A program made the position numbers and the translations under genes. From positions 806,001-870,000 of the forward strand of contig JBLDXI010000042.1 of NCBI GenBank assembly GCA_047495785.1: a stretch of 64,000 bases of DNA, read 5' to 3'. Each line of letters opens with the position of its first letter. Position 1 is the first letter of the stretch. Positions 6,011 through 64,000 of the stretch are shown piece after piece. The stretch comes from Lepidodermella squamata (lineage: Eukaryota; Animalia; Gastrotricha). The notes beneath the pieces are model-generated. The model was not told the origin of the DNA, ran no database searches, and saw only the letters and a list, made by a program, of their open reading frames with translations.

Positions 6011-9000
6011 TCAGCGCATTCCAGGAATGGAGAAAGAAGCACAGTTGACTTCCGCAATTCGCAATTGGGCTGGGGTCAGCGTTGCATTGAATATGTTCAG
6101 ACAGGCAATACTTCCCATCAGCGGCTCAACCGGATCGGCCCACGATCTTCAAAGACACAAATTGCATATAAATAAATGCATGGGGTGAAGGTGAGCGCAA
6201 ACTAACCGTGCCAAACTAAGTGACCCATTGTTTGGAATGGGTGATATTAAGCCGTTAAGAGAGGCTCTATACCTATCGCAAGCAATATTGAGGCTGCCGC
6301 TTGTGTTAATAACTGACACGAAGCGCCACTTATGACTGAGGGGACACGTGACCTCAGAATAAACGCTACCAACTGCAGCACGGAAAATATTGTTGCTCCG
6401 AGCCAGAATTTTCAGACCTTGTGCGAATTCAAGAAGCGGCCTGTCCTGTTCAGTTGACAGCGTTGCGAAAAAGGTAATGCTGAAACCAGCGGTCATCGAC
6501 TTGATTTTATCAGCTGATGCGCTTCTTACATCACTCGACGCGAAATAGAGAGCTGTGTCAGAAACGCCGAACGGTCCAGGAACAGATGAAAGGGCCGTGA
6601 CTGGAGCTGAGAAATTAGCCTTTGGCTCGACACGGTCGTTCAAGTCGGATACCAACGGCCAAATTGCCAAGTTCGACGGCATCAGTGTTGTCAACGACTC
6701 AGGCATCCACGTTTTTCCTGAAAAAACCTCCACGCACTTTTTGCGAACCATCCACAGGTGTTGCACGAGAAGGGCGTGTTTGTAAATCGAAAGACACGTA
6801 AGACGACTAAGGTTGATTGAGCCAGATTTCAATTTGTTGCTTGTGATTGGCGATGTTGTGACATTGACCGTATTAACGACGTTGTCGCAGACTGCTGTCA
6901 GTTGATTTAATGTGTTGTCGTATGAAACCGCGATGTAGACCCACGATGGAGATCGGGATGTGATTGACATGCAGCTGAATGAAATCGCGGCAGCGGTATC
7001 ATCTGAAAAGGAAATGCTATTGATTACTACATCTCTGCCTAAAATCATTTTCAACCAGCCAAAAGCTATGCTAAACTGCTCAACTATACGAGCGCATTTC
7101 TTTGACTCTCAGAGTTCCGACACCCTATTCCAAGCCAGCTGCGATTCTACGAATATTAACGACCCTGCTTTCAATAAATCCCAAGCTGTAGCATCATAGA
7201 CAACTCTATACAGATCGGAAACTAGCGATCTTCCTATAGTAAATAAATTCACACCAAAACGTGAAAAAGTGGGCACGCGACTTTCATTTTTATTCACTCA
7301 TCGCCCTATCCGTCCATGGTAATTTTTCCGATTTTTAATTATTTTCTAAAATTCCCTGAGAAAATGTTTCATTTCCAACAAATTTCAAACAAATTTTCCG
7401 GACTACTAGAAGCGCTCCTTATTCGCTCCTTATTAATCTTATTCGATTTTTGCTCTATCCAAAGATATAAAACTTGAGCGAATCAGAATTTTTTTCGAAT
7501 TTCGCGAAATTTGCATTCGCTTGATAATACTTTGAGCGAGCTAAAAATAGCTACAAAAAACCTAATAGCTATTTTTAGATTTAGCAGTATCACGCAAAAT
7601 CCAAATATTACAAGTCAGAAAATTTCACAAAATTCGAAAGAAATTCTGATTCGCTCAAGTTTTATATCGTTGGATAGAGCAAAAATCGAATAAGATCATA
7701 GTATTTTTCTCGGAATTTTTCGGCTTAAAATGAAACATTTTACCGTCCTGAAAGACTCTTGAAATGGCGATTTTTCGTAAAAGTGACCAACTTTGAGATA
7801 ATTTTAAAAAAGTTAGAAAAAAACCGTCTCATGAGACGGGACTCATTCGATAGAGGAGCGCTTCTAGTATTCCGGAAAATTTGTTTGAAATTTGTCGGAA
7901 ATGAAACATTTTCTCAGGGAATTTTAGAAAATTATTAAAAATCGGAAAAATTACCATGGACGGATAGGGCGATGATTGAATAAAAATGAAAGTCGCGTGC
8001 CCACTTTTTCACGTTTTGGTGTGAATTCAACTTCAAACTCACCCATGTATATGTCAATTCTGTTCAATCCATCGCTGGTTTTAGGGTGGTAGAAAATCCG
8101 GAAAAGATCCGTCGCGTCGTAAAACACAATAACGGGTAAAGCAATAGCAGATGAGCTCTGATACCAGTAGGTAGATACCGTGAATGACGACTGGCTGAGA
8201 TCGAGTTTGAGATTTTCCACCTTGAAATAATTGTTCGAAGTTAATACGTAGGCGGGGGCCGCAAAGTCGAAAGGGTTGCTAGCATAATTGACAGGTCCAA
8301 CAAACGATCCGTTGATTCCGTTTTCACTGATATCACTCGAGCCGTACGCTTGCGTAAGCGGGAAGAAAGCTAAGGCGGGAGGTAACGCAAACGGATTCTC
8401 TGTTAATAATTTTTATTATCATATCTGCAATACCAGACTTCAGACTAACTTACGCTGTTCGCAAATCTCCAAAGTGGTGTAGTTTGTACTGTTGTATAAC
8501 AACTAAGTTCAAGGGAAACAATTGGGCATCTTGTATTAAAAGAGAGGAGAGCATAAGATTCGTCAGCTGATAACATACCCAATTTTCAGGACAATCTTCG
8601 TCAACGGAAACACACTTTGAAGCCATGAACGGGTTACTAGCGCATAGCTTGAACTAATTGCAAAAAACACAATTATCCCTTTTTTCCCGAAGCAAAGAAA
8701 ATCCCCTATTAGAGACTAGGAACTGGGAAGTGAGCGATTGATCGCGAACGGCTTTGCGGCGAATATTTTTCATTATAGATAATAAAGACTAGCACAGCCT
8801 TCCCCTTCCCTGCTTGGTCACCTGATTTGTTTGAGTAGAATTGGAGCCTACAACCTCAAACCCAAGCACATTATGTATTGTCTAGTTGGGCTACGGATTC
8901 CGCTGGACAAATTACATTTTTTCTTACGACTCTACCTCCTCGTATCCAAAAACGTTTACTTACCGCTGAAGGTTTCATACAGGCGGCGTAATTTTCGCTG

Positions 9001-11877
9001 AAATTTCCACTCGTATAAGATGATACCTGAAAATGCATTAAAACAAAGTAGAAATGAGTTTGTTACGAAATCAGGCTAACCGGAGAGATTCCTTGAGAGC
9101 AAGTTGTTGAGTCCTGGCATCGTTCTCCAGTTGCGCATCGATAAGCGCTCTAATTTATAATTAGTGAGTAATTTAGAAATTGCAAATACGAAGACCCGTT
9201 CTTACAGCGCTATAGCAGGCACTTTCCGATGTGTAAGAAACGTTCCCAATCTATGATGAAAGATTATTCTTACATGAAGTTCCCCACTTAAGCGCTAACT
9301 TACGCTAATTTGAGGATTGGGACAGGATAGTCCACTAACGCAGCCTACAAACGTTTTGTTGCTGTCGTAACAATGCACGTAATTGACAACTGTTCAGCGT
9401 CGAATAATCATAAAAGTAGCAGAATAGCGACAGAAGGAGAAACCAACTTTTGCATAGCTCAAAAGAGTCGTAGCTAGTCTCAGAAGCTCCAGAGATCTAA
9501 ACACAATTGAGCTTCTTGTGAAATTCAAAGAAAATCAGGGGAAATTAACTCACAGTAGATGCTGGGCAACTCGAGTTGACAGGAATGCACACGGTAAGTA
9601 AATTTGAATTCGGATCCAAGCAGCGTTTATGCTTCCCCTTTAATTATTATTTAATACTAATGTGGCTTCGAGTTTCGAGCAAAATTGCAAAAACCTGAAT
9701 TGCAGATTGGCAGGTTTGGAAATTGGTAGCGTATGGCCCGGAACTTGCTCCAAGGCTTCCAAGCTGTTAAATTGAAATATACGATAAAACAGTCAAGAAT
9801 TCAAGAAAAGCTACTCACATCGTATTTCCCCGTTCCGTTTGGGCATGAATCATCACAGGCGCCACCAGTCGAAGCGTCATAACACATTCTGATGCTCTGT
9901 TAGGAGAAAAAACCGATTAAAATTTGCCGCAAAGCTAATAGCTAAATTCAAACCCCTGTTTCGCAAACTGTTCTCGTAGAGAACACGTTCAGGCTAGGGG
10001 TCTGTAAGTAAAACAAAAATAAAAAAAAAGATATTACCTTATCACTTCCACCTTTCAACCCGCTTTTTAATAGAAGCTCAGGACTTTACTTGACCGAATC
10101 AACTACAACCAGCTCAACTATGCTTCCATACATTAGCCCACTCTCAAACAAAGCCCGCTATTATAACCACTTCTCGGGTGATCTCGGGTAACCCCTTCTC
10201 AGACCCTCTTGATTTAAAAAGCCTATGTATTAAATCGCAGCGTTAGGAGTATCAAATGTGACTATTACGTCTGTCCCGTCGCATGGCAACTGAGCAGGCT
10301 TGCATCCGGAGAACGCGGACCCTGCCGAGCTAAAACAGCGCCGATGAGGAAAATAAGACTGCGGGGCTGGAAGAAACGAAGCGTATTAACAAATCTGTTT
10401 CATTGTTTTTCAACGAACCAGATTCGCACTCGCCAAGGTTTGAAAATGAAACGCCAGTCGAAAATTGGTTCGTACTACCAGCCGAGCAGTTCGTGCTGCC
10501 GTCAGTAGGGATGCATTTGACAAGAGCGTAGGTTTGCGAGTTCAAGCAGAATTGATGCGGTTTCTAAACAGAAAAAATAGGAAAATCGAACAATTATATG
10601 TACAAAAGTTTACCGTATATGTCGCGAGATAGCTAAGGCATTGTGCATAATTTGCCCCGAAATCGCCAACGCTGTTGAAAGTTGCCACCTAAAGAGAGAC
10701 AAATAATTCGAAATCATCCAAGCAATGACTGGCTCACCAAGCTCATGGGAGATCGGCAAATTCCACGGCAAACGAATGTCGAAGCGGATTTGCATAGAGC
10801 TGCGGGCTACAAAGGAAATAAAATCGGTAACGCTTCAACTAAAATAAAACAAATCAACACACCCCTGAAGAGCAGTGTCTCTTGTCGATATAAATTCCGC
10901 CGCTGAAAGCCTGAAATAGAACAAAATTCGATAGTGCTATCGAGATGTCATTACATGACCTGTGATTGGGTGGCAGTGTTACAGCCAGGCGTAGCCAGCT
11001 GGCAGCCAGCGAATGTGCGATCCGACTTTGAGAAACACCGAACATGCGGCGAAAAATCTGGGCTTCTGGCGGCTAAAATAACATTATGAGCCGAATCAAT
11101 TACTATTCATTATTCTGCTCGAATCAAGCAAACCGCAAACCTCGGATTTTCTCAAGGCACTCATTAAAGCTGATTATCGGGTTCAAGGTACGCTAACATT
11201 CATAAGAAATGGAACAGGTAATTGCTAAAATCATTTGAAATCCTCACCCAGCCAGGCGGGCAATTGCTCTCATATGGGACGCAGGTCATAGCTGTATCAT
11301 TCTCACACTTCATAGCCGGATTTTCCTTTGCAACAACATTGAAAAAATGTTTGATTCGCTGAAAAATAATCGCGTAATACCATGTACGGCCGAAGTTTGT
11401 TGATGCAGTCATCGTACCGAGGTTTAAAAGTTAAGCCCGTGAAATTTAAGTACTAGGAAAAAATTTGAAATTAAATTCAGCGGCAATTGAAAGAATAAAT
11501 TACCGGAATTTCGTTCTTTGAACACGAAACGATCTGAGGCAGGCATCTTAGTGTGGACTGTTTGGGGTTGTAGCAGCTATGGGCAGACTGAATAAAGCAA
11601 ATTCGATTTCTTATTGAACAGCGGCGAGCAAATAAACAAACGCCCTGCTTGCAAGTCGCGTAATCAGGAAATGATGGGCCCAACTAATCGCGAAAGCATT
11701 TGTTTAGAGTGGGTTGGGTCAGCGAGTACCTTGACTTACCTGAGCTTCTTCAAATAGATAACAGTCCTCTTTACAGCCGATGAAATCATCGTTCCATCGC
11801 GAGACGCATCGCTTAAAGCAGTTGGCACAGCTAACAGCGATCACAGCAAAAACCAAATAACCACTCAATAAATTCAT
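6011..11877 (-). CDS. Family member A1: signal peptide + 12 four-Cys repeats + 2 LamG/ConA-like domains; 26 exons, apparently intact
   Basis: ATG at 11877 (MNLLSGYLVFAVIAVSCANCFKRCVSRWNDDFIGCKEDC...). Exons traced by eye with GT-AG borders and consistent phase. Large exon lies within ORF 6149-7054. Last exon SWADPVEPLMGSIACLNIFNATLTPAQLRIAEVNCASFSIPGMR* with stop at 6011-6013. Confidence 0.85.
7250..8023. mobile_element. Foldback MITE with ~170-bp TIRs and CAC...GTG ends in an A1 intron; contains an inner palindromic element (~7436-7694)
   Basis: cacaccaaaacgtgaaaaagtgggcacgcg... mirrored by ...cgcgtgcccactttttcacgttttggtgtg, flanked by AATT on both sides. Confidence 0.85.
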
Positions 11878-12771
11878 CTATTCTTTTTAAATGAAAAAAT
11901 GAATGAATGAATGAGTGACTGTAAAAAGTGATATTTGGGTGTTTGACTTTGCAACGTCATCGCGCCACATTTACCACGCGATGTTTCCAAGTCGCGTGAA
12001 TTACGTAATTTCATTTTTGTCCTACTTTTGCCGAAGGAGCACTCTCAGCCAATTTAATAAAAATAGGTCAAGGTTAACTGTACTGGAAACGTACTGGCTA
12101 CGGAATTTAAGGCGTCGTGAATTGACTCCGAGCTGAGCTAGCGCAAACAAATCGACCATTTACTGATCAGCGAATATAAAAAATTGAGTTTTAGGTGTTC
12201 CATGCACGGCAAAATATTGCGCATTGCGTACGCCCTTTTGAGAGAGGAGAGGAGTTGAAATTGTTAGAAAATATTAACATTTATGAATATTTATTCGTCC
12301 TGATTGAAAGTGAGATGCAAAAAGAAAGACTGAAGACGTAAGAAAAAATTGGAAAATGCAACTTTGGATTTACCCATAGACAACACTGTAACAGATAGGA
12401 ACGATCGCAAACGATCGACCTATACTGCATTTCTTCAGCACGCGATTACTTTGTATGCCAAACAACGCCCTATCCGCTCATTACAATTTTAATTAATTTC
12501 AAAAATCGATAGGCTAAATTGTCCTTCATCTAATTGTTTGACTTTCAGTAGATAAATAATAGATTTCGCGGTCTATCGAATGAGCTCAGGTACATCTTGG
12601 AGGCTCGCATGATCAATTTACTAGAATTTGGTGAAAATTGCTATTTTTGTAGATTTTCGGCTAATCTGCCATCTGCCATTCTTCTGCCGCCGTTGGCTCT
12701 CCCGACAAATTTTTGAAAATTTTAAGGAAAATTGATTTATCAATGTTGACAATTTTCTCTATCCAACGATA

Positions 12772-12932
12772 TATAAGTTGCGCGGTAATTATTTTATTTT
12801 GATTTTCCGATATTTTTTGGCTCGAATAATGATTTTATTGGGGTGCAGCTTGAACTTTGGATTCTCTTGTTGCGTTGTTCGAGCCAAAAAATATCGGAAA
12901 ATCAAAATAAAATAATTACCGCGCAACTTATA
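12772..12932. mobile_element. Palindromic MITE remnant truncating the last exon of A2
   Basis: tataagttgcgcggtaattattttattttgattttccgatattttttggctcgaa and its reverse complement. The adjacent ctctatccaacgatata also occurs in the 7436-7694 element. Confidence 0.75.
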
Positions 12933-12941
12933 ATTATAATT

Positions 12942-15900
12942 ACAGGCAATACTTCCCATCAGCGGCTCGACCGGATCGGCCCACGATCTTCAAAGACAGA
13001 AATAAATATGCAAATAGTTGAAAGCGAGCTTCAACAAACCTCGCCAAGCTGATGGATCCATTGTTTGGAATAGAATTGGTTGAGAGTGTACCGTACAAAA
13101 GGCTTCTATTCCTGTCGCAAGAAATAGAGAAGCCACTATTGGTTGAGGTCGCTAAGTAAACAACGGCCACAAAGCGCCATTGATGATTAAAGAAACACGT
13201 CGTCGCAGTGGAAACGTTTCCAAGCTCAACGCGAACTGTGTTGTTGCTTAGAACCACAATTTTTAGCCCGGGCATCGCCCCGTATGGAGCGAATTCAAGA
13301 AGCGTCCTTACCGGTTCAGTTGACAGCGTTGCGAAAAAGGTAATGCTGAAACCAGCGGTCATCTTCTTGATCTTATCAGCTGATACACTCCTTGCATCGC
13401 CCGACCCGGAATAGAGAGCGGTGTTTAAAATGCTGAAAGGTCCAGAAACAGATGGAAGGGTCGTGACTGGGGCTGAGAAATTAGCCTTTGGCTCGACACG
13501 GTCGTTCAAATCGGATACCAACGGCCAAATTGCTGTGTTCGAAGGTATCACTGTTGCCAAAGATTCAGGTGTCCACGTTTTGCCGGCATGAACCTCCAAG
13601 CACTGCTTACGAACCATCCACAGGTGTTGTACGAGAAGGGCGTGTTTGTAGATTGAAAAACAAGAAACACGGCTAGAGGTGGTAACGTCACTTTTGCCAG
13701 CGAACAGTTTATTGCTTGTAACGGGGGGTGTTGTGACATTGACCGTATTAACAACGCTGTCGCAGACTGCTGTCAACTGGCCTAATGTTTTGTCGTATGA
13801 AACCGCGATGTAGACCCACAATGAAGAACGGCTTGCCATTGGTATGCAAGATAATGAAATTGGAGCAGCGGTTGCATCTGTAAAAGCACATTTTCATTTT
13901 CTGAAAATCCCCCAAAAAACCACAGGGCCCTTTGGCCATGAAATTGGGGCCCGAAAATACCCCCTAGCTCGAGGATCCTACTTCGCGCACTGGGATGAAG
14001 TAAGATGATCCTCGAATTTCAGCCCCCAATATATCAGACTAAAAGGTCCACCTGTACCCCCGTACCCACCGGTACATCGCACACTGCTCAACTGCCAACT
14101 CACCCGTATATATGTCCATTCTGTTCATGCCATCGCTAGTCACGGGGCTGTAGAGAATTCGGAAAAGCGGACCTGCGTCGTAGAAACCCATCACAGGAAC
14201 AACGGATCTGACTGTTGTCGCCAAATACCAGTAAATAGATAGCGTAAATGATGACTGGCTGCTGAGATCAAGTTTGGCATTCTCCAGCTGGAAGTATCTG
14301 CTTGAAGATGTCACCAAGATGTAATTCGAAGGGGCCCGTAGAATAGCCAATAACAGATCCAACATATGTTCCGTTCATTCCATTCCATTCCATTCCATTC
14401 CATTCCATTCCATTCCATTCCATTCCATTCCTGATATCACTCATGTTGTAGGCCTGCGTGATCGGGAAGAAAGCCAAGGCGGGAGGTAATGCAAACGGAT
14501 TTTCTGTATTAAATCATCATAATTATTATGAGACTATGAGACTTAGGACAAACTTACGCTGTTCGCAGATCTCCAGCGTGTTGTATGTTGTAATATTATA
14601 TGGTAACTAATGTTAGAAAGCGAAAATTATTATAGGAGAGATGGGCAACGAGTATTTGTTGATGACTTACCCAATTTTCGGGACAAATGTCGGTCACGGA
14701 TACACATTTTGAAGCCATAAACTGCTTACTGGTACATAGCTTGAACTAGAGACAAACGAATAAAAGTTTTATTGGCAAGTGTTCGACGGGAATTATCATA
14801 GAGAATAGAAATGTCAAAAGCTATTGAAGCTTCAAATTATACAAATTGGATTTTTAATAGACCATCCTTTCTAATTTATGCAGCGGATAAATCTAAACAG
14901 TTTCGATCAACTCGTGAAATTTACCTTGTATAATGGGAGATTACTGAGGCATTGGGCATAATTAGTGCCGAAATCGCCAACGCTGTTGAAAGTTGAAACC
15001 TGAAAAAGAGAAATCGAAGCGATTGGTTACACTCATCTCAATTTCCTATACCAGACTCATCGGCGATCGGCAAACCCCTTGACAAAGTAACGCTGACGCA
15101 GATCTGCAAAGTGCCGCTGGCTGTAAAGGGAAGACGGACCCATATTTCCCAAGGCTAAAATTTTCTAACGTGAACAACTAACCCCGGTGGTGCAATGTTT
15201 TTTGTCGATGTAGTTTCCAGCGCTGAAAGCCTGGATAAAAGAAGTTATTAAAAATCATAATTTCTAATTGAAAAATATAAATAATTCAGCTGTATCTCGA
15301 GATTTTTTAATTAATTTAAAAATCCAACCCATATATTTGATACTTCTAGGTTTGAAGACATCTTCACCTGAGACTGCGTTGAATCATTGCATCCTGGATT
15401 AGCCAGCAGGCACCCAGCAAATGACCCATCCATTTTTGAGAAGCACCGAACGTGCGGCGAATCAGGAATTTTTGCAGCTATAATGCAATTAAACACGTTA
15501 GTACGAAGCGAAAAAATTGAGTCAGCAACCTCTAATCCGCGATAAGCAGTCAGACAAAGTGATTATGAGATTTACTTCACGCTGAAATACATTAAAGGCG
15601 CTGAAATTGAGATAGACTGGAGAGTACCAATCTCACCCAGCCAGTTGGACATTGGCCGTCAATCGGGACACAGGTTTGATCGGAGCCATTACCACACTGG
15701 ATTGCTGGGTTGTCCTGCGCAGAAAAGTACACAGCTTTCACTAGAAAATTTCTCATATCAAACCATATAAGGCCGAATAGCGCCGAGGCAGGCATCATAA
15801 CGCGGCCTGAATGCCAAACCCGTAAAATCTAAATGCTGTTTGGAATCAAACTAATTTTCGGATAATTATTGAAATAAAAAAATTACCGGAATTTCCTCCT

Positions 15901-16251
15901 TCGAGCAAGAAACGAGTTTGGGGAGGCATCTCAAAGTGAACAGCTGCAGGTTGTAGCAGCTGTGGGCTGACTGAATTACAGCCCGTGTGAAAATTATAAC
16001 AAAAATCCTCGTATCAACTTACGCCTTGTTTACAACTCGTAAAGTCAGGAAGCGCTGGGCCCAGCTATTCCCATTAAAATAAATGAAGCAAGCTGTATTG
16101 AATAGGCCAAACTCACCTGAAATTCTTCGAATAGGTCACAGTCAGATTTGCAGTCGACGAATGCATCGTTCCATCGTGAAAAGCATCGCTTGTAACAGTC
16201 AACACTGCTAAAAGCGAGCGTGACTAGCAAAAGAATTTGCAAAAAATTCAT
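12942..16251 (-). pseudogene. Family member A2: signal peptide + 6 repeats (1-5 and 12) + 2 LamG-like domains; frameshifted and 3'-truncated
   Basis: ATG at 16251 (MNFLQILLLVTLAFSSVDCYKRCFSRWNDAF...). Frameshift near 14325 (homology switches from ORF 14268-14477 to ORF 14039-14365). Last exon breaks after SWADPVEPLMGSIAC. Confidence 0.8.
14376..14430. repeat. (CATTC)11 microsatellite inside an A2 coding exon
   Basis: Perfect pentamer array that reads NGMEW repeats on the minus strand. Confidence 0.95.
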
Positions 16252-17775: not shown

Positions 17776-20700
17776 ATGAAATTATTCGAAGCTGTTTTGC
17801 TTGTCATGATCGCTTTTAGCAGCGTCGATGGCTATAAAAGATGCATATCGCGATGGAACGACGATTTCGTCGACTGCAAAGAAGACTGCTATCTATTCGA
17901 AGAAGTCCAGGTATAAGTACCTGCCCTATTTTAATCTGGCTCTTATAAATTTTTTAACAAATAGCTGGGGCCAAAACGTCCTGATTACGTCAGTTGTAAA
18001 CAAGGCGTGAGTTTATAAAAACTATCTGATTCGAAGTTATACTTGGATTCTCTTACAGTCAGCCCACAGCTGCTACAACCCTAAGCTATTCACTCTGAGA
18101 TGCTTACCTCAATTGCTGCCGTGCTCAAAAGACGAGATTCCAGTAAATTATTTGATTCAATTAATTTCCGAAATTATTTCCCATTTATTTTGTGAACAGC
18201 ACATGAATTTCAGTGGCGTGACTTTCAAATCTCGTTATGATGCCTGCATTGACAAAATTGGGCCATATATGGTATTTATTGCTTTCTTTTATTGATTTTT
18301 CTAAGTCTTTGTATTGGAAATTATCTAGGAAAATCCGGCAAAACTGTGCGCTCTTAATTCAAACCTAACCTGCGTTCCGTTCGAAAGCAGATGTCCAAGT
18401 GGCTGGGTGAGAATTTTTCGCGAAAAGTTTCTGAATTGTTTTATTTTCTGATTTCAGCGTGAATCGCATCCGACCTTCAGCTTGAATGAGTGCCTACGGC
18501 TTATAAACGGTTTGTTCGGTTTGACTTCAAGGATCAAAGTATAATTTCCCCCATTTCAGCTGTTCGAAATTCAGATTATTCGCCTCATGTTCGGTGCTTT
18601 TCGAAGATGGACCGCTCTTTCGCTGGCTGCCTGCTCTCGACTCCAGGCTGTAATGTTGCCACACAGTCACAGGTTTATTCATCAATCAAGAAATATCTTC
18701 AAATTTCTTTGTTATTTAATTGAATCTAGGCTTTTAGCGGTGGAAATTTCATCGACAAGAAGCATTGCTCAGTTGGGGTTCGTCTCGAATTATCAAATTT
18801 ACCCTTGGTAATTTTGTTATTCTATCTTCCAGCCTGCTGCCCTATGCAAATCAAGGTCGAATTTACTTTTCCGAGCAATTTGCAGGTCACCAATGAGTCT
18901 GGTAAACTATGAAATGCTTTCCATTCACTTGTTCACTTTCCAACCTTTATTTTGCTTGTAAAGGTTGCAACTTTCAATAACGCCAAAGACTTTGGTGCAA
19001 ATTATGCGGCATGCCAGAGCTATTTATCGATTTACATGGTAATATTAGAAAAATTCGTTAATTGAATTGTATTTGAATGTCACTACTTTCAGAAACCGCA
19101 TACCTTTTGCCTGAATTCGCAAAATTACGCCCTCGTCAAATGCATTCCAACAGATGGCAGCGAAAACTGCTCGGCTAATAGTACAAATCAATTTTCAAGC
19201 GGCGTAACATTTCCCAATCTCGGCGAATGCGAATCAGGTTTGTAATAGAACAAATGATTTTCCAAACGAAGACCTAATGCTTTCATCCCAGCTCCGCAGT
19301 CTTTCTTCCCAAATCGACGCTGCTTTGGTTCAGGACGATCGACATTCTCTGGATGCAAACCCGCACAGCTTGCATGCGATGGCACAGACGTGAGATTGCT
19401 CCGAATGTTATTCCCATTCACGTTTCAATCTATAGACACCCGATGCGACCATCTTCTCGACGAAATCAGCTTGTGAAACTGGGGTAGGTCCTTTAATTTT
19501 TTGATTTATTTGGGGATTTTATGAAAATTTGTTGACAGGCAATCAGTATGTGTTACGATGCTACGACCGGCGGCAGCTGCCTCGATTCTTGTACAAACGG
19601 GACTGGCAAATACGATGTAATTTGAGTTTAGGATTTGAAATATTCCGGAAACCTGCGAATCATGATGGCTGCAAAGCTTGAATTTTCAAAATTAAATTAA
19701 ATTGCGATTTATTTTGAGTTTGAATTTTTTAAGGATATTTTCGAATTGTCCTTCCAACAATTTAGCTTGGAAGCATCGGATCAAGCTCAACACTATTTGC
19801 AACGAATTTCGCAACATGTGCCACTTCGATTCAGGTGAGAATTATGATAGATCTTGGACGCACTGTTTTACCATTATTTCAAATTGTTTTCCAGGGGAAA
19901 CACAAGCAATGTGTTATAACAAATTCAAATATCCTAGTTGTGTGTATTCCAACGATTTCGACATGCCCAAACTCCACCGTGAGGCATTTTCTATTGGGTT
20001 TGAATCAATTTTCAATTTTTTCAAATTTTTTTAGACGCCTGCTGCCGATTCCGCAATTTACGACTCGTTCGCTATTTGCAACAGTTTGTTTTCAAAATTC
20101 TTGTTTGTTCAATTTATTATTATATAAAAAATAGTTGTGGATGTTTACGTTCACTGTTACGATAGCGATAAGTTGTACAAAGGCTGCTATCTTGGACCTA
20201 CTTGCCCGAATCAGCTCATAAACGTGAGTCATGTCACTATACACGACGATTTGCTATTTTCCCTCAATTTCACTGCAGATTGGGACTATGACCTACACAT
20301 CCCAAAGCGCCTGTAATTCTGCGGTAATTTTACACATTTACCTTACTGGCAATTTTATTTTTTCCTGTAATTTCAGACAGCCTATCAATGTGGATCTTTG
20401 CTATGTCAGGATTCGCAAACTTGCCAACAAGGACAGCAGCAAGTATGTCTATGATGAAATATAATTCTATGGGTTTGTTACAGCTGTTCACTTTACAGAG
20501 TGGTCTATTTGCGAATGGGAACTATTCCAGCAATTTGGATGCCTGCATCGCAGCGCTTCCTGTGAGTTTATTAATCCAAATGCCGGAATCCTGCGTTCCG
20601 CGACCTTACTCCCCAAATTTATGTTTCTCCAACAGTACAGCCTGTGCACAAATGACCTTTTGAATGTCAGGAAGATGTGTTTCCGTTGCGAAAAATTGTC

Positions 20701-22158
20701 CAACGTCTTGGGTGAGACTTATAATAAATTAGAAATAAACGTAAATTGTCAATAATATCTTCAATTTTTATTTCAGGTGAGAACCGGACCGTCTCTAAGC
20801 ACATCAGAGCTTTGCGAACAGCGTAAGCTCATGTTTTTCAATGTCGGAGCAATAATCAATTTTAAATTCTATAGAGACTGCTTTCGGATAGAGATGCCGC
20901 GGTTAAAAAAATAACCGCAAAACCGCGGTTAACCGACGGTTCGGTTCGGTTCGGTTCATCGGACGCTGTAACCACGGTTTTAACCGAAATAACCGCCCTA
21001 TAGAGCGGATATAGACCCTCAGTTGCAAAACTTCGGAAAATTAAGCATATTATTACATGTTATTACCTTTTCCATTCTTTTACGCTGGTTCGCAAGTGTT
21101 TTTCACATGTCAATTAGCCGATAGGAAAATCAATCAATTAGCCGATCACCGATCACCGATCACCGATAATCGATAATCGATCACCGGTACGTGATAATGG
21201 ATGTTGCCAATGTATTCAGGGGCAAATTTTACCCTAGACCCCAAATTTTGAGGTCGTAATTCATGATAATATAAAATATATCGCAAAATCAATTTCGCTT
21301 CCGGTTTATGATCAACCTTTTAATTTGGCGGTTTTAATCCTCTGAAGTTTTCAAGATTTAATAAATCGGGTAAACCGCCTTCTTTGTGCCTGAAACCCCC
21401 CTTAGAAACCTTTCACGTTTAGGTAACTTTTCACGCCGGATCAGAATCCGTTGACAGAATTTCGATTGCCATCATACCTCCGGAGATAATTGCCTTTTTT
21501 AAATTATTTTATTGCTTTATTGCACCCATTTAATTGTTTTCCCCGGATGAGTTTTATAGTCGGGTAATACATGAAACTATGCAGTTTTTTATGTAGAATC
21601 ACGTGGTGTAGCTCAAATTCTAACTAGAGCTATGGTTAAGGGGCTATTGCTATGCAAAAACGTTCAATTTTAACATTCAATGGAATGAATGCAATGCCAG
21701 GGATTAACCGTGTTTAACCCGGTTAAAACCGCGGTTAACCCGGTTCGGTTACCGATTTTCGATTAACCGAACCGTAACCGAACCGGCGGCTTGAAACTTT
21801 AACCGCGGCATCTCTACTTTCGGACTGCCGCTTGAAGTGATTTATCTCCCGCTCACGCAGACATTCGGCCTCAGTGATATCAGTGCCAACGAGATCCACG
21901 TAACATTGTTTGGAGGTTCTCCGAATTACGCCACGGGCCCGTTCGGCTACCCAAGCTCCGTCAGCTCTCTCAGCGCGACATATTCTTACCTGGACATGGA
22001 TAGCAGCAAGCTGCTAGTCGGCTCGTCATCTTTCACGGTGTCTGTTTACGCCAGCTTATCGGGCAGCAGCTACGCATATACAGTGATCCAGTTCTACATT
22101 GATTACCCGCTTTTCGTCATAACTTACGACCCGGCTATAAACAAAATTCGATATTCAG
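17776..22158 (+). pseudogene. Family member A3 (inverted): signal peptide + 12 repeats + first LamG exon; disrupted
   Basis: ATG at 17776 (MKLFEAVLLVMIAFSSVDGYKRCISRWNDDF...). +1 frameshift near 20663 (YSLCTNDLL/MSGRCVSVAKNCPTSW). hAT insertion inside the ETAFG|LPLEV exon. Last two exons not found. Confidence 0.8.
20889..21816. mobile_element. Non-autonomous hAT-type element inserted in an A3 coding exon
   Basis: TIR tagagatgccgcggttaaa / tttaaccgcggcatctcta. Perfect 8-bp TSD ctttcgga (20881-20888, 21817-21824). Subterminal aaccg/cggtt repeats. Confidence 0.92.
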
Positions 22159-32576: not shown

Positions 32577-32697
32577 CTGAAGGTCTTATTTATTTTTTTA
32601 AATTCAAACTCCTCAAGAAAATATGAGTACTTATATTTTCTTGAAGATTTTGAATTTAAAAAAATAAATAAAAATTAATAAATAATAAAGAAATAAA

Positions 32698-47974: not shown

Positions 47975-50900
47975 CTACGAGAACTTTTCGCATAACACAC
48001 CATCCCTTGAAGCTTCACACGGAGGCGCGTAGAAATTTGCAATATTCGCGTAACTCATGATGGTAACACAGTCCCCGTCCAGAAAAGCCCATCGGTTTGG
48101 ATCGTCAATATAAGTTGAGCCGTCGTCCCATACAAAATTGTTGCCTTGCTTGGTCAGAGCGACCCAGAAATAAAAATTAGCCTTCCCGCTAATCACTTGA
48201 CTTGCTTTGGTCCACTCATCGTTCGTCCGAATCGTTGCCAAAGTAGCATTGCTCGCGACGCATTTCGGTGAAGCGGTGGTCTTATCGTAATTACCACCAA
48301 TCGGGTATAAAAGATAAAAGTAACTCTTCACCGCAGCCTTGCAGCTGTTCTCGTCCGCATACTTGACATTAGCCGGAGTTCTAACATCAGCAGCCGCGTT
48401 GCAGCCAGTTGTTTCCAGCACGCATTTAACTGACGCGTCACTTTTGGCGACGCAACGGACGTAGAACACCTGCAAAATAAGCGATTCAGTGAGGAGGAGG
48501 CTCATTTTGTACTAGGTAAAAAAGGACACTTCAACAGGCTCTAAATACTTATTATTTTGTTTCTAAATATTTCTTCTCTCATTAAAATTTGAAAATCATG
48601 GATTTTTAGGATTTTTCTAGAAGACGTCAATGTTGAATTATTTTGATCCTATACTTTGATGTTGAAGTTAGTTTGACCTGAGCATTCACCAAATTTTCCT
48701 TCGGATGTTCAGAAAATTACGATAAATTATTTTTCTGATAAACCATAAAACAAGTTTTTTTGATGAAGCCCCATGATGAACCCTAAGCAAACCCGAACCC
48801 TTACAACAACCCTAACCGGAACTCTAACACCTAATCCTAACCACCAACCCCTATTCCTAATCATCATTTGGCTAAAAAAACACGATTTCATGAAAAAATG
48901 TATGAAAGGTAATTTTGTCATACATATAAATATGTCTAAAAGAACACTTCGAAATACAAATTGAAAATGTTCAATAAAAATAACCCTTGATTGAATGCTT
49001 AGGAGTCTTGGAATGTTTGAACAATATTTCAGAGGCGTTTGAAATTCGGGGTTGAGGGCAGGGCCGGATTAACATTCGGGTGGACCCCGGGCACTTTCCG
49101 TTTGGCAGCCCTACTTATCATATTTTCCACAAAATCTAGATTTTGCCTTACTTGAAGCCATAAATTTTCATACCTGAAACGCCCTTTACTTATTCATTTA
49201 CTTACTTAGTCACCTTGCTTTTCCCGTTAACTATTAAGAGTTAACTCGGAAAACTCGAGGGAAGAGGATATCTCATGAATTCTCAATTGAAACGCCCTCA
49301 ATATTAGAGTCGAGTAAGAGTAGTAATGATGAAATAAATTGATAGATTATGATAGGGCAGTGGTTCTCAAACTATTTTCGCTCCCGGTCAAAAATGGCGG
49401 CCGGCTGGCGACCTTTCCGAAGTAACATGAAACCCGCGAACTTTTATTTTCTTTTCTCGAACCATTTTAACTTAAAGCGTCGGAACCATCGGAATATTCA
49501 ATTTTTATATTTTAAATAATAAGCATCGGAAAAGTCGCCTTTATATTTATTCTTATTTTCCGATGTGTTAAGACATTATGTTCGATCAAATAAGTAACTT
49601 TCAATGAGTCGCAAATTAAGACTTAATTAAGAACGTCCCCGCCCCCGTCGGCGACCCGCACCACGGCCGCGAGCAACCGCCGGAGCAACCAGCTCTTCTG
49701 GAGGCTCAACCCCGCGTCCACGACCGCGACCTCGTGCTCTAGAGCCTCGACCAATCGGTTCGGTTTCAGGAGGACCAGCAGGAAAAGTGGCTTCAGTAGC
49801 TGTTTCAGGAGCCATGCCAACCTGCTGAGCGAATTCCAGCGCACGACCGTGGCGAGGCGGCCTACCCCGAGGGTTACCGCGCAGCACCAGCGGAATCGAC
49901 TGAAGATGTTTCTCGATCGGTTTCGAATCCAGCTTGTGACCGAGAGCTACAACATGCTCGCACGGAATTTTCTTGGAACCTAAGCGGCACGTACAGCTGA
50001 TAAGATTTGGCTCGGCAGTGATCAGTGAACAGAAGTCAATCGAACATTCAAATTGGGCCAAACTCGTCCACAAGGCTGTGTTCGCGCTTCAGAAACAACA
50101 CTGTTGACCTGCCAGCCAGGTTTCATAACGAGCCATGATGAGGGACCGACTTCTTCGAAGCACTGAGTGAAACGTAAAAACAGCTGGTAACCTTCTTTTT
50201 TAAGGCGGTCCGTTATCGTGGCTGACGTTGCGAACGGTTCTGAATGAACAACCAAACTCGAAATAAGCGACGAACTCAGCATAAACATCGGCGTGATCGC
50301 TGGCCGCCATCTCATCCTTGGCAAGCTGCCACAACAGCAAAAACTAAAAATGAAAAATTGTTAATTTCGGAATATCTTAACACCGTCGGAATTACCTCAG
50401 GGCGTGACAATGCGAGCTGAACGAGCGTTAGTAGGTCGTGCACCTTGTACCACAATTTGATCCGACTCTCTGTAAACAAAGGTAAAATTGTCTTACGACC
50501 GTCGGAAAGAGGCAAATTACTTACGCTACATCAATCGTAGCACTGCTCCCTTGCCAAAGATTGTTTCGATCGCAGTAGTAATATAGCCCTTTCCTCCGAC
50601 CCCTTAGCTATCTCGCCATTCAAATCGTGGACATAACACCATTTGTCAATTTTTTGCCCTTGCCTTTTTTACGAAATTCTTGCCCAATCACAACATCAAT
50701 TTGGCGGTCTTTCATTTCTTGAGCAGCAGGAGCTGTTTTATCTTTTCCTGTGCTAAAATTTTGAGTACCCCAGGTAAATTCGAAAAATTCCTTGTTATTC
50801 AAATCACAATTTGATTTACGATGTTTCCTATTTTTACGTACCCTTTTTTCTTAGCTAATTGATTTTGTTTTCGACCTGACTGCAAATTTGATTTCGAACA

Positions 50901-53900
50901 TTTTTTCTCCTCATTTTGATCAATATCAACAAAATTATTGTTTACAAAATTATTTACAACATGACAGTCAACAATGTCATACCGATTCCGATTCACGTCA
51001 TCGCAGTCAGGCCCGCCAGAATAAATTAATGTTTAATAAATCGTTGTTCATTGCTGCTTCAATTTAGCGCGAATTCCGACGGTTTAAGGTAGTGTTACGA
51101 TACATTAGTCGCGTGTTCCGATGAAATAAATCAAAACAAGTCATTCCGATGGTTTAATTTACTTTCCTTGCGATTTTTGTATTTCCGACGCTTTAAGTCA
51201 AAATGGTACGCGAAAAGAAAATAAAGGTTCGATGATATTAGCTGAGTCCACCTTTCCGGCCGCATTGCCTCTTGAACCCTCAACCGGCCGCCTGTAATGA
51301 GAAAATAGGACCTTCCCGGCCGCACGCCTCAGTAATCGAGAATTGAAGTTGTTGAGTGCGCTTTTAAGCAGATTGGTTTTTAAATTAGGGTTTGAGCAGT
51401 TGTTCTTGACTGAATGATTACGCGACCCCAGATTGGTCATTCAACTGAAGTCGCTACGCAACACTCTCATAAAGTCAAAAAGTGAAAGACATTTTATGTA
51501 ATATTTTAGCCAATTAACCCTTAGCCGCCGAAGACGTGTACACGCGTTAATTCCGGAGAAAATTCACCGTGGTCGGAGGATTTGGGCTATCGAACCCATT
51601 GTTGCGTCATAAATTATGATAAATCGATAGCAAGAAACAAGCACTCCCCGAAAATTCAAATTTTCAAAGCCATTCTGACCAGGTCGAAAATAGTGAGAAA
51701 AATTTTAAATGACTTGTTAACACGTCATGAAAACGCGTTAACACGTCATAGCAACGGCAACCCAGGTAAATTTCTTCTGAAAAAGAGGTTCGGCTTTCAA
51801 TCTAAGGCTAAATGTAAGACTTTCTGCCGACTCAGAATTTGATTTTAGCCTCTTCTTGATTTTCTGGGATTTTCTGAAAGGTGCTCGGGTTAACACGTCA
51901 TTGCGCCGGCGGCTAAGGGTTAATATTTGGCCTTCAAACTCCAAACCCGTGCATTAATTAACCGAGCGAGCGAAGCGAGCTTTAGCTAACGATATTTTTC
52001 AAGAATTCTTTCTGAAAAGAGCTAAAAATGCATTCAAAGTTTGCATTGAGTGTTTCTCGCCGTGACTCTTACGATCCCACGTCCCCTTCCGCGAAAACCT
52101 TCCCCGACCCTATTCAAAATTGCCCGCGATAGCTGAGGCGGGCTAGGCCGTATTCAATTCGTGCAGTAAACACTTCGAAGGGCTGCGTAATTGCCTGGCA
52201 GGCTGTTTTTCGTGAAGAAGTTGGTAATTGCGTCCGGGGCTTCTCCTTATTGAAAGATTTGAAAGTGAATCGGCGAGCGAAGCGATAAACTTTTAAGAAA
52301 ATTGTGGATATTTATCATTCGGATACGTCGAATTTTGTTGGAAATGTGCACAAATTATGTAAAACCCTGGACTATTCCCCTCAAAAGAGCCGTCCGGCCG
52401 CACGCAATGCAAGAGATAGGCGGACCTCTGCCGGCCGCCAAAGTGGGCCTTGCCGGCCGCATGCGGCCGGAAAAACGGGGTTTGAGAACCACTGTGATAG
52501 GGCCCTCCTGTTAGCGGAACCAAATTTGCTGTATCGGAACCAAAACGGATTTTTTTATTTTTAAAACGATTTCTGAAGTGGGTGCACACAGCTACTTAGT
52601 TGTAACTTTTTAGGGGTTCACATAGCCTTGACCTTTTCCAAATTATCTTTTCGGTGAATTTATATACACACCCCCAAGACATAATTCACGGAATGTTGAA
52701 ACTAGGCAATTCACGTATTGAAGGGACTATTTTCGGGTGCAATTTATCGACGAGTTTCCTCATTTTCTTCGCCTACCTTTATAGCTGCGCGACAGGCTGC
52801 GTAATTTTGGCTGAAATTCCCACTCGTATAGGAAACAGTCTGCAAAAGAATTGCGTCATGTGGAATCTGGAATACTCGGAATTGATCTAACCGGTGACAG
52901 TCCTTGAGAGCAAGTTGGCGAGTCCTGGCACGGTTCTCCGGCCGCACATCCATAGGCGCTCTAATTTGCAACAAAGGTGAATATTGATTTCACATTATTA
53001 CATGTTATTACCGCTGTATTGCATGCAATTTCGGTTGGGTAGGTGACGTTTCCAATCTGTTTCATACAAATTTCAGCTCAATTTAGCCTCTCAAGCGCAT
53101 CGACTTACGTTGATCAACGGATTGGGACATGTACGTCCAATGAAGCAGCCTTGGTACGAATTGTTGCTGCCAAAACAGTGCACGACATCGACGACTAATT
53201 AAAAATTGGATACTCGTTAATGAGCAAAATAACAGAATGGATAAAACCAACTTTTGCATAATGCGAATGAGTCATAGGTGGTTCCATTAGCTCCAGCTAC
53301 CTAAAAATCCACAAAATAGTGAAGAGTTGAAGTTAAATATGGACGCAATAAAGCTGGACATTCCAGTAATTTTCACAGCTATCGCGAATCCACATCCCCT
53401 GGTTTTCTGAAAATTTTCCCCTCAAATTTCTAGACCCGAAAAGCTGGTTCTTGTCCATAATGAGAGCTTTTGGTTGTTTCAGAAAATTGCGTGAAAAAAA
53501 CTCACAGTCGAATTCGGGCAATTCGAGTTGATCGGTATGCAGATAGCAAGCTTATTTGTGTTCGTATCAACGCAGCGTTTTTGTTTCCCCTGTAAACAAA
53601 TGTAATGAGCTGGCAAAAATTGCATGAAGAGCATCAAGCATCAATACCTGAATGGCAGCTACACAGGTTTGAAAATTGCTTGCGAAAGAACTTGATCCAA
53701 CACTTCCAAGCTGTAGAATTATAAAACAGAACATATGACTCGAACTAAGATGGGAATTGATCATTACATCGTATTTCCCGGTTCCGCTTGGACATGAATC
53801 AAGGCAGCTACCACCAGTAGAAGTGTCATAGCAGATTTTGATTGACTAATAATAAAATAATATTTCAATTTTCCAGAGAGTTTTTTTGTTGGAATAAAGT

Positions 53901-55721
53901 TCAACCCCTGTTTCACAAATTGCTTTCGTTGGAAAGATGGTCTGACTTGATACCTACACAGAAAATACAAGCTAGATTGGGTAATTTGTCAATTAATAGG
54001 CCTTACATCGGTTCCACCGCAAGGCAACTGAGCTGGCTTGCATTCGGAGAACGAAGTTCCAGCCGAGCTAAAACAGCGTCGATGAGGGAAATAAGGCTGA
54101 GGGGCTGATAAAACATCACGAATTTAGACTGAAAAATACGATTCAAAACATGTTGAGCGAACCAGATTCGCATTCACCAAGGTTTGGAAACGTGACGCCG
54201 GTCGAAATTTCGCTTGTGGTGCCAGCCGGGCAGCTTTTGGAGCCATCAGTAGGGATACATTTCACGAGAGCATAGGTTTGCGAATTCAGGCAAAACTTGT
54301 GCGGTTTCTGAGGAAAACAATATTCATCAAAAGAAATATCAGGTAACGAGCCTGAAAACTATTACCGTGTATTCCGCGAGAAAACTGAGGCATTGAGCAT
54401 AATTTGTCTTGAAATCATTAAGGCTGTTGAAGATTGCCACCTGAGAGTAAATCAGAAAAGTAGCGTAGATTCTGAGAACAAGCGACTGCCAACCAGACTC
54501 ATGGGCGATCTGCAAATCCCGCGGCAAGCGAACGTCGAGCCAGATTTGCATAGAGCTGCGGGCTTGGGAAAGATAGAGCGCGGTTAAAACTGATAACTGT
54601 TAACTGTTAACTCTCACCCCAGCAGAACAATGCTTCTTGTCAACATAGACTCCACCGCTAAATGCCTGAAGTTCAAAAGATTATTTCAGGGTTAAGTCTT
54701 TCTATTAAAATTCTTTCAACCTGTGATTGAGTGGCATTACAGCCTGGCTTAGCTAGCAGGCAGCCAGCGAATGAGCGATCCGACATGGAAAAGCAGCGAA
54801 CATGAGGCGAAAAGTCTTGGCTTCTGGCGCCTGGAAATACAGTAATATAGCTGAATGGATGATGCTGCTCGAATGATGCAAACCTTCGATTTGTAATAGA
54901 CACTCGTTCATACTGAATATCGGGATTACTTCACGCTGAAAAAATTTAAAATTTAAGTTAATTGATTTTATGAACTTGAATAAAATTATAAATTAAATTA
55001 AATGATTTATCAGTGATACAATTTTTGAAATTTATAATGAAAATAAAAATTAAATAGACAAAATGATCACAATCTCACCCAGCCAGGTGGACAAGTGCTT
55101 GCATAAGGCACGCAGGTCTGAGCTGAGTTATTGGCGCATTTCCTAGCCGGGTTTTCCTATGAGACATAACATGGAAAGCAATTTGAATTCAGCGAACATC
55201 ATATTGGGAAATACCATGTAAGGCCGAGTTTTGTTGATGCATTCATCGTAACGAGGCTTGAAAGCCAAGCCGGTAAAATTGAGGTGCTATAAAACAAATT
55301 GAAATAGAATCCAGTCATGATTGAAAACTTAAAACCTACCGGAATTTCGTCCTTGGAACACGATACGATTTGAGGCAAGCATCGCAGCGTGAAAAGCTTC
55401 GGGTTGAAGCAGATGCGGGCTGACTGAAATACATTTATTAAATAAAAATTTAAAATCGTACATTTTTAATCAACCTACGCCTTGTTTACAACCGGCGAAG
55501 TCCGGAAACGCTGGGCCTAACTATTGGTGAAAAAGTGAAAAATTCAAAGCATGGGTAAAACAGGGCAGGCCTGGACCAACCTGGACTTCTTCGAATAGGT
55601 AACAGTCCTCTTTACAGTCGATGAATGCGTCGTTCCATCGCGAGATGCATCGTTTATAATAGCAGTCAACACTGCTAAAAGCGATGGCGACAAGCAGAAA
55701 AGCTTTGAAAAATCGCTCCAT
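47975..55721 (-). CDS. Family member A5: signal peptide + 12 four-Cys repeats + C-type lectin-like domain; 22 exons, last intron ~4.3 kb
   Basis: ATG at 55721 (MERFFKAFLLVAIAFSSVDCYYKRCISRWNDAF...). 21 in-frame exons to 52777 (...NYAACRAAIK, phase 0). The phase-0 acceptor at 48469 opens VFYVRCVAKSDASVKCVLETTGC... then a CTLD (KCVASNATLATI, FWVAL, FVWDDGS, GDCV, PPCEASRDGVLCE). The final splice is inferred. Confidence 0.75.
49627..50345 (-). pseudogene. Decayed SWIM zinc-finger coding sequence (MULE-transposase-like C-terminus) with RGR-rich tail
   Basis: ISCTCRLGSKKIPCEHVVAL fits SWIM CxCx(n)CxH. It is followed by PRGRP and RGRGRG. The upstream frame (LLWQLAKDE...AEFVAYFE) has stops. Confidence 0.7.
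51518..51919. mobile_element. piggyBac-type MITE nested in the hAT element
   Basis: TTAA|cccttagccgccg ... cggcggctaaggg|TTAA. Confidence 0.9.
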
Positions 55722-63495: not shown

Positions 63496-64000
63496 TCAGC
63501 GCATGCCCGGAACTGCGAAAGCGGCACAATTGATCTCGGCCAATCGCAACTCGCTAAAACTGACAATTTGGTTGAAAATGTTCACGCATGACACACTCCC
63601 ATTCAGCTGCTCTAGCGAATTAGACCATGATCTTGTAAAATGACCATCAGGCTGGTAAAATCTAGATTAACAAGAAGCGGAAACTTACCGCCCTAGAATG
63701 AATTGACCACTTTGTGTGACAGGCCGCTGGCCACTACCCACGGTAGTAATCTGGCTGTCGGCACGAAAATACGTTATAGTGCTGGTCTTAGCATGTATGA
63801 TAGCTAGAAACGACCAGCCTTTTTCCACATCAGTGGCGAAACTAAACGTGGATTGACCATAAGCCCGGATTTTGAAGGTTGAATTTTGTTCTGCTGTGAC
63901 TTTGAGTCCCAGAGTTGTTCCATCAGGAGCGAATTCGATTATCGGCATGTTCGATTGGCTTGACAATGTGGTCAAAAACGCGATGGTGAAACTGGTGGTG
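63496..64000 (-). CDS. 3' end of another B-like family member; 5' part lies beyond the right edge
   Basis: IIEFAPDGTTLGLKVTAE...GWSFLAI...SGQFILGR|SWSNSLEQLNGSVSCVNIFNQ...EINCAAFAVPGMR*. Confidence 0.85.

Follow-up and report, generated by a model that had tools for sequence, protein, structure and literature searches.

The 64,000-nucleotide stretch of Lepidodermella squamata DNA analysed here (hereafter the window) raises the question of whether its repeated cysteine-rich and lectin-like coding blocks belong to a genuine gene family and, if so, what such genes encode and how the copies came to differ. The earlier note on this stretch had proposed a tandem family of secreted modular proteins, in which a lectin-fold head is carried on a Cys-repeat stalk, under birth-and-death evolution. 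As detailed below, the family is real and transcribed; it is likely to be lineage-restricted, with genes predicted to encode secreted extracellular binding proteins.

Gene copies and their architecture

By combining tblastn searches with the RNA-supported 748-residue model of gene A5 and Cys-motif and HMM maps, we found seven copies in the window. One of them is inverted, and the other six lie on the minus strand. The earlier count of at least seven paralogs and five fragments holds for the copies, the fragments found here numbering at least four. The repeated DNA shared between copies is 61–87% identical, far above chance. (Our copy INV is probably the A3 of the earlier note, and our A3 probably its A4.) A1 (6011–11877, minus strand) consists of a signal peptide, 12 modules and two LamG-like domains and is predicted to be intact on the basis of an ORF at 6149–7054, tblastn matches, an exon chain and a last exon open to the stop. 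A3 (23411–30591, minus strand) also carries a signal peptide, 12 modules and a double LamG head (ORFs 23602–24453 and 26100–26627); its 23 stalk exons form a full phase-consistent chain corresponding to the 12 modules, and its last exon was found, in phase. A5 (36217–41083, minus strand) comprises 14 coding exons and encodes a signal peptide, six modules and two LamG-like domains. In B1 (47975–55721, minus strand), a signal peptide and 11 mini-exon modules are followed by a single exon (approximately 47975–48469) containing module 12 and a C-type-lectin-like domain (CTLD); module 11b ends in phase 0, matching the phase-0 CTLD exon. The last minus-strand copies are A2, described below, and the double-LamG 3' part of an edge gene (63499 to beyond 64000), which runs off the window and whose head continues at C42:869688–870548. 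The fragments, all on the minus strand, are (i) one and a half modules at 1067–1332, 81% identical to the module 4 exon of A5 (repeat D7); (ii) part of a head exon at 30858–31087, matching residues 542–613 by tblastn; (iii) an orphan module fragment (R3b/R4-like) at 42855–42994, detected by tblastn and motif maps; and (iv) an orphan last exon with a stop codon at 44345–44479, which tblastn assigns to the C-terminal strands of LamG2. Within the array, at 41711–42517, there is also a gene for a secreted mucin-like protein.

Six copies have a visible 5' end. All of these encode a signal peptide and either 6 or 12 four-Cys modules; each begins with a methionine and a hydrophobic leader and then reads (F/Y)KRC, and the exon chains and motif maps confirm the shared arrangement described earlier. 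Outside the leaders, a hydropathy scan detected no membrane-span-like window, the single borderline one lying within a LamG1 strand, in agreement with the previous claim that the proteins have no transmembrane segment. Secretion is thus predicted from hydropathy and sequence pattern. The four-Cys module is about 45 residues long, and the majority of modules are split across two mini-exons; in series, the modules would form a rod stabilised by disulfides. In the gene models, phase-1 introns follow modules 3, 6, 9 and 12, so that the modules are grouped in triplets. The head is made of two ConA-like/LamG (Pfam Laminin_G_3) domains connected by an almost invariant linker or, in B1, of the CTLD.

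Expression and reliability of the gene models

A5 is expressed: seven of its GT-AG introns are removed in spliced contigs of the public run X1 (CT..AC joints in the plus-strand view), and its reading frame is open across all 14 exons. Spliced transcripts, on which the earlier proposal had been made to depend, therefore exist for at least this copy. The RNA support concerns A5, and the models of the other copies are predictions. When applied to the RNA-supported A5 gene, our exon-chaining script recovered 9 stalk exons out of 11 without error and misplaced boundaries in the other two; it also put spurious low-score exons in the transposon-filled intron of B1. For this reason, the exon ends given for A1, A2, A3, INV and B1 should be read as approximate.

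The heads adopt two lectin-type folds

The assignment of the LamG head rests on both profile and structure comparisons. Pfam Laminin_G_3 (PF13385, clan CL0004; cut-off 27.6 bits) matches the A5 head exon with 35.8 bits and the paralog L001 with 44.2 bits, and falls just below the cut-off for A3 (26.7 bits); the A1 and A2 heads alone give no match, and the Pentaxin profile (PF00354) matches none of the heads in the window. An AF2 model of the two-domain head, in which LamG2 was modelled without its last exon, has a mean pLDDT of 72.4. Its LamG1 part (residues 1–240 of the model, compared with VIA-align) superimposes on ConA-like domains with Z scores of 16.6–12, indicating a two-sheet jelly-roll β-sandwich; the matches include domain 4 of a GH43 arabinanase (Z 16.4), a trans-sialidase lectin domain (Z 15.3), CBM40 and legume lectins, and a Z score of 16.6 was obtained with the jelly-roll half of clostridial receptor-binding domains. 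An ESM Atlas feature search with the head returned generic Laminin_G_3 clusters only. More specifically, LamG1 shares its fold with the N-terminal jelly-roll half of the clostridial neurotoxin receptor-binding domain and with CBM40/sialidase lectin domains (Z 15–16.6, rmsd of about 3.1–3.4 Å over 190–200 residues), but the catalytic, translocation and β-trefoil parts of these proteins have no counterpart here, and the match does not point to a toxin function. Kinship to clostridial neurotoxins was set aside: with the whole two-domain head, Foldseek aligns clostridial receptor-binding domains with a TM score of only 0.33–0.37 and an rmsd of about 16 Å, a common ConA-like sandwich being all that is shared; the VIA-align comparison by domain was the more informative of the two. 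The Pfam profile Toxin_R_bind_N gives a weak match below its cut-off (E 0.0096).

The B1 head matches Pfam Lectin_C (PF00059) with 33.9 bits, for a cut-off of 22.6. The AF2 model of the module plus CTLD has a pLDDT of 89.9, and Foldseek matches the modelled CTLD with mannose-receptor CRD4, LOX-1 and NKG2D (probability 1.0, TM score by target 0.58–0.68). Across nine CTLD paralogs, the W(I/V)(A/G)L motif and the cysteine columns are invariant. The sugar- and calcium-binding motifs EPN, QPD and WND are absent from all nine of these exons, where the loop region is short; glycan binding by the CTLD head is therefore doubtful, judging from its sequence. Altogether, Pfam scores and AF2 models concur with the earlier description of the products as secreted and modular, a lectin-fold head being joined to a stalk of Cys repeats.

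The stalk module matches no known domain in the collections searched

The 12 modules searched matched no Pfam family at E values up to 5–10, and a sequence-profile search of the PDB with the same 12 modules gave chance-level matches (best E 1.3); a feature search of the ESM Atlas with one module yielded no usable match. Thus, at the level of sequence, neither a curated profile nor a solved chain connects the module to a known small disulfide type (EGF, Sushi/CCP, TSP1, LDLa, Kazal and others). The whole architecture had no relatives among 1.84 billion cluster representatives or 5.8 billion word-indexed proteins, although the weight of the word-indexed searches, which returned no matches for the head exon or for the module–CTLD alignment, is limited by the length window of the tool.

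Among the 1.84 billion representatives, the proteins outside the family that come closest to the head are from Lingula anatina (XP_013404145) and Branchiostoma (CAH1243361, XP_078610005); they are uncharacterised and have several LamG domains (E 5e-15, 27% identity). The Lingula and Branchiostoma proteins contain the same domain type, with a (W/F)PL...D.SGN start and a terminal pair of cysteines 20 residues apart, but they have three to five LamG domains in series, in some cases with VWA, Sushi, CTLD or PAN domains, and lack the four-Cys module. Secondary Pentaxin matches are found only in these relatives. Such LamG domains also occur as a tandem run in an ENA metagenome, on a eukaryotic contig of 1.1 Mb. 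The architecture, described earlier as unrecognised, is so for the stalk but not for the LamG domain type.

Gene turnover in the array

Intact, pseudogenised, inverted and chimeric copies had been said to coexist in the array, and the copies examined here bear this out: A1 is predicted to be intact, A3 yields a complete model, A2 is chimeric and truncated, and INV is inverted. A2 (12942–16251, minus strand; six modules and a double LamG head) resembles A3 in its 5' half and A1 in its 3' half. Its stalk has a dS of 0.59 to A3 versus 1.57 to A1, and its head a dS of 0.48 to A1 versus 1.41 to A3; the chimerism is also visible in the DNA repeats D1–D3. The last exon of A2 is interrupted after about 20 codons by a palindromic MITE-like element (12770–12945) with terminal inverted repeats, which has 55 matches on both strands genome-wide; given this truncation, A2 is a probable pseudogene. 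INV (17776–22163, plus strand) encodes a signal peptide and about 12 modules and continues into the N-terminal exon of LamG1; it has no head exon and is therefore truncated. The arms of its inverted repeats I3–I6, only 71–77% complementary, show that INV is a paralog that has diverged, as opposed to an artefact of amplification.

Comparison with a near-identical segment on contig C36 uncovers further differences. The transposon insertions in the last intron of B1 (48725–52725) are missing from the C36 copy, which is 94–97% identical, and pieces of these insertions have many copies of 98–99% identity elsewhere. The A5 gene is present in one segment and absent from the other, and the C36 counterpart of the 30858–31087 fragment carries a fuller head. 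With the chimera, the transposon-truncated copy, the inverted truncated copy, the orphan exons and the presence/absence of A5, the proposal of birth-and-death turnover is well founded.

As to mechanism, the exon phases suggest that in-register unequal crossing-over could insert, delete or swap triplets and heads while keeping the frame, because the triplets are bounded by phase-1 introns. Together with transposon insertion and truncation, such crossing-over would explain the 12- and 6-module genes, the chimera, the head swap, the broken copies and the orphan exons.

Selection and possible functions

Pairwise dN/dS values (ω) are 0.11–0.25 for the stalk, 0.3–0.5 for the head and 0.05 for the linker. 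The genes are thus under purifying selection, which is stronger on the stalk than on the head. Conservation of the cysteines with variation of the intervening residues, noted earlier, holds between different module positions but not at the same position across paralogs, as the stalk values indicate. The stalk would be a general extracellular spacer, and the head would bind a ligand outside the cell, either a glycan or a protein surface. In our view, soluble recognition or agglutination is somewhat more probable than a role in matrix, cuticle or adhesion; an immune, venom or adhesive role may be envisaged by analogy only.

An immune repertoire diversified in the germline, in which selection would drive the heads to track microbial surfaces and the stalk would present them, as in mollusc FREPs or amphioxus VCBPs, is favoured by several observations: a very large tandem family with turnover, lectin-type folds, a head whose rate of evolution is about double that of the stalk and a stretch of LamG2 (about codons 226–270 of the A3 head) that combines an ω of 0.77–1.2 with the highest column entropy. 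However, ω remains at 0.3–0.5 gene-wide, and the sole window above 1 (ω 1.2) spans 30 codons, is not significant and derives from non-independent pairs; moreover, variable columns show no excess in loops over strands (p 0.44), old pairs (dS >1) predominate among the paralogs and the CTLD lacks the sugar-binding motifs. Such an immune repertoire is possible but not probable, and the diversified recognition system suggested earlier is not borne out by the dN/dS values or by the distribution of the variable columns.

The proteins might alternatively be part of a structural extracellular material (cuticle or scales, mucus or an adhesive secretion), the lectin-like heads cross-linking a glycan-rich matrix. 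In gastrotrichs, the cuticle is elaborate and there are adhesive tubes, and long Cys-rich rods whose modules conserve their positional identity, as well as the presence of the mucin-like gene (41711–42517) within the array, are consistent with this idea, to which hundreds of diverged paralogs, unusual for structural proteins, and the absence of low-complexity or cross-linking motifs from the A and B genes are opposed; we hold it to be possible but not probable. A bolder scenario appears unlikely, namely that the four-Cys unit is a new, gastrotrich-only domain, that this unit, in triplets with phase-1 borders, is a universal scaffold carrying interchangeable heads in hundreds of germline genes and that the family is an independently evolved head-swapping innate recognition repertoire in which the variable patch of LamG2 is the specificity site.

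Family size and assembly

Genome-wide, the family comprises at least 129 LamG heads, at least 150 module–CTLD exons and at least 150 unsplit modules, these counts being lower bounds that may nonetheless be inflated, as C36 holds a second copy, 88–97% identical, of the 26–56 kb part of the window. The source assembly was probably obtained by multiple displacement amplification of the DNA of one animal, with a heterozygosity of 2.99% (PMC11660948); copy counts and some of the rearrangements may consequently reflect two haplotypes or assembly errors. A search of the genome for COX1 returned nothing, and its HSP70 points to a bilaterian that has no close relative among annotated sequences. That the apparent paralogs, inversions and chimeras are largely products of uncollapsed haplotypes and chimeric amplified reads is, despite this probable origin and the C36 duplicate, highly improbable: copies within the window differ by 13–39% in DNA with dS values of 0.4–2, far above allelic divergence, complementarity between the two arms of the inverted copy is only 71–77% and an independent run (X1, 2015) contains spliced A5 at 100% identity. 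As regards the existence of the family, an artefact is thus largely ruled out, and remains a caution on the counts.

Relation to known systems and significance

The combination of a stalk with a terminal binding head has several parallels. GAS6 and protein S consist of a Gla domain, four EGF modules and a C-terminal tandem LamG pair. Like them, the proteins described here would be secreted and place two LamG-fold domains at the C-terminus, after a rod built of small disulfide modules; unlike them, they have no Gla domain, their modules are not EGF (no Pfam match) and their LamG domains match PF13385 and not Laminin_G_1/2, and we detected no relationship between the sequences. Secreted proteins with a spacer and a lectin-fold head, encoded by large tandem families with turnover, also include C. 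elegans CLEC proteins, mollusc FREPs, amphioxus VCBPs and vertebrate collectins and ficolins, but these have different spacers (CUB, IgSF, collagen) and different heads (FBG, chitin-binding). Lineage-specific CTLDs are also described for Xenoturbella bocki (PMC11521371). In particular, the collagen Gly-X-Y repeat of collectins and ficolins is absent here, the stalk being made of four-Cys modules only. Among invertebrates, it is common for a lineage to have its own expansion of secreted lectin-like proteins; the present family is one lineage's version of this well-known pattern and introduces no new principle.

Its interest lies elsewhere. The family is among the largest in gastrotrichs, a phylum with almost no molecular biology, and its stalk module is missing from the domain databases searched. 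It illustrates clearly how, through intron phase and tandem gene arrays, different binding heads can be combined with an unchanging stalk, and it supplies candidates for the immune, cuticle or adhesive chemistry of gastrotrichs.

A tandem family of Cys-stalk and lectin-head genes

GC content in the window is 38-46%, with no strand trend. Direct repeats link long paralogous open frames on the minus strand (6149-7054, 12940-13839, 23602-24453, 36405-37256 and one at the right edge), which are 61-87% identical to one another and two of which reach or almost reach the Pfam cut-off for Laminin_G_3; a further frame, at 47975-48505, matches the Pfam Lectin_C profile. Upstream of the long frames, small exons carry a recurring motif, C-x(5-9)-C-x(4-8)-C ... 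C, with an intron mostly before the fourth cysteine. The tandem family of Cys-repeat stalks and lectin-fold heads described in the earlier note is confirmed, and its structural interpretation holds.

Transcripts from one copy were found in a public sequencing run from 2015, stored as contigs (X1), which contains a quarter of the words sampled from 36300-41200, where gene A5 lies (36217-41083, minus strand). The X1 contigs are 100% identical to the A5 exons and lack seven stretches of 49-1143 bases, all of which read CT...AC on the plus strand and hence GT-AG on the minus strand; the exons joined in this way form a single open frame. Seven introns are thus spliced out of A5, which disposes of the possibility, raised in the earlier note, that no copy yields spliced transcripts. 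With six further 5' exons, placed from acceptor and donor sites, the predicted A5 protein has 748 residues: a signal peptide at the start, a stalk of six four-Cys modules, all but one of them split, and two LamG-like domains, the first divided between two exons and the second completed by a 45-residue last exon.

Intact, broken and chimeric copies

The other copies were modeled by profile-guided exon chaining, which, with A5 as the control, recovered 9 of its 11 stalk exons exactly. The gene A3 (23411-30591, minus strand) gave a full, phase-consistent chain of 23 exons encoding 12 modules; chaining likewise gave 12 modules for A1 (6011-11877, minus strand), about 12 for the inverted plus-strand copy (17776-22163) and six for A2 (12942-16251, minus strand). 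In B1 (47975-55721, minus strand), 11 modules are followed by a phase-compatible exon that encodes module 12 and the CTLD. The introns after modules 3, 6, 9 and 12 are in phase 1, so that the stalk consists of triplets. Apart from the leaders, no window resembling a membrane span was found.

Two copies, A2 and the inverted one, are broken. The last exon of A2 is 97% identical to that of A1 over 60 bases, at which point a palindromic element present in at least 50 copies in the genome begins, and the remainder of the exon was not found within 1 kb. In the inverted copy, the N-terminal exon of LamG1 is present and the head exon was not found before the next gene. Judged by synonymous divergence, A2 is also chimeric: its stalk is nearest to A3 (dS 0.59 versus 1.57 to A1) and its head to A1 (dS 0.48 versus 1.41 to A3), the direct repeats D1-D3 being also relevant here. 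Orphan pieces lie at 1067-1332, 30858-31087, 42855-42994 and 44345-44479.

Several other elements were noted. Near-perfect palindromes at 32695-33233 and 7246-8027, with arms 98-99% complementary, may be MITEs or, where unique, amplification artefacts; the former is part of an element of about 512 bp with more than 40 genome copies at 95-98%. At the array's left end, ORFs (1390-2437, plus strand) resemble a LINE-type endonuclease/reverse-transcriptase remnant, and ORFs with an Arg/Gly-rich tail in the transposon insertion of the B1 intron (49627-50324, minus strand) have 98-99% identical copies on contigs C24, C9 and C7. Inside the array, an intronless ORF of 268 aa (41711-42517, minus strand) has, besides a signal peptide and a mucin-like tail rich in Ser/Thr/Pro, three short Cys motifs with a weak Pfam match to DUF7107 (E 0.058). 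The product of two small exons at 45797-46130 (minus strand) combines a signal peptide with two cystine-knot-like halves, for which the Pfam match to Toxin_9 (E 0.002) stays under the cut-off.

Predicted folds of the module and heads

The module+CTLD exon, modeled from an alignment with eight paralogs (pLDDT 89.9), comprises a module made of a β-hairpin, a third strand and a short helix, the remainder being a CTLD whose top PDB matches are the mannose-receptor CRD4, LOX-1, NKG2D, CLEC9A and CD69. The EPN/QPD and WND motifs are absent from all nine CTLDs examined, which are therefore C-type-lectin-like rather than canonical sugar binders. The double-LamG head was modeled from L001, a paralog without the internal intron, and 22 partial rows (pLDDT 72.4). 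In domain-level structure alignments, its first sandwich matches clostridial receptor-binding domains in their jelly-roll half (Z 16.6), domain 4 of a GH43 arabinanase (Z 16.4) and a trans-sialidase lectin domain (Z 15.3), and also aligns to CBM40 modules, legume lectins, ERGIC-53 and calnexin. As modeled, the first sandwich has the ConA-like carbohydrate-binding fold; the likeness to the clostridial domains is confined to this fold and carries no information on toxicity.

Family size and relatives

The search of the genome (121 Mb in 151 contigs) gave, as lower bounds, at least 129 matches to the head exon, at least 150 to the module+CTLD exon and at least 150 to the unsplit module (among 944 first-look candidates), clustered on contigs C42 (that of the window), C36, C4, C64, C73, C81 and C85. 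Outside the genome, a HMMER search of 1.84 billion representatives with the head as query returned six proteins. The best are multi-LamG proteins from Lingula and Branchiostoma (25-28% identity), which are uncharacterised and have in common with the family heads the start motif and the terminal Cys pair of the domain but, unlike the family, lack the four-Cys module. A eukaryotic contig of 1.1 Mb in ENA metagenome assemblies (ERZ25072724, ERZ26695794; L043/L044) bears a tandem run of at least four related LamG3 exons, which are about 35% identical to the family LamG1 and have the same start and end motifs; four-Cys modules are absent there as well. Searches of Pfam, the Atlas and PDB sequences gave no match to the four-Cys module, and only in this sense is it undescribed.

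A second copy of part of the window, and structural turnover

HSP70 from this genome shows about 75% identity to many bilaterian sequences and is not close to any of them. The published assembly of L. squamata, obtained from amplified-DNA HiFi reads, comprises 122 Mb in 157 contigs, with 43% GC and 2.99% heterozygosity; lectins and gene families are not discussed in that paper (PMC11660948). Contig C36 (1233000-1256444; L045, L046) duplicates 26-31 kb and 41.5-56 kb of the window at 88-97% identity, so that genome-wide family counts may be inflated. The C36 copy is devoid of 4 kb of transposons present in the last intron of B1, has 3.65 kb in place of the 10.5 kb that include A5, and bears a fuller head where the window holds a 230-bp fragment; A5 is missing at the matching place, and an A5-like 5' end lies elsewhere. 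C36 may represent the other haplotype, or the stretch may have been duplicated recently; under either reading the comparison shows fast structural turnover.

Selection and function

dN/dS is 0.11-0.25 in the stalk and 0.3-0.5 in the head, dS being saturated in most pairs. A sliding window over the youngest clade, in which dS is about 0.4, puts dN/dS at 0.05 for the linker between the domains (RKKCLQIHAGKTW...WPLVSD), and values of 0.77-1.2 occur only in the distal LamG2, which is also the most variable region in an alignment of 14 sequences. Loops are not enriched in variability (p 0.44). The pattern in the distal LamG2 is suggestive and not significant. As for function, the diversified recognition system proposed in the earlier note would be one of two readings of similar likelihood.
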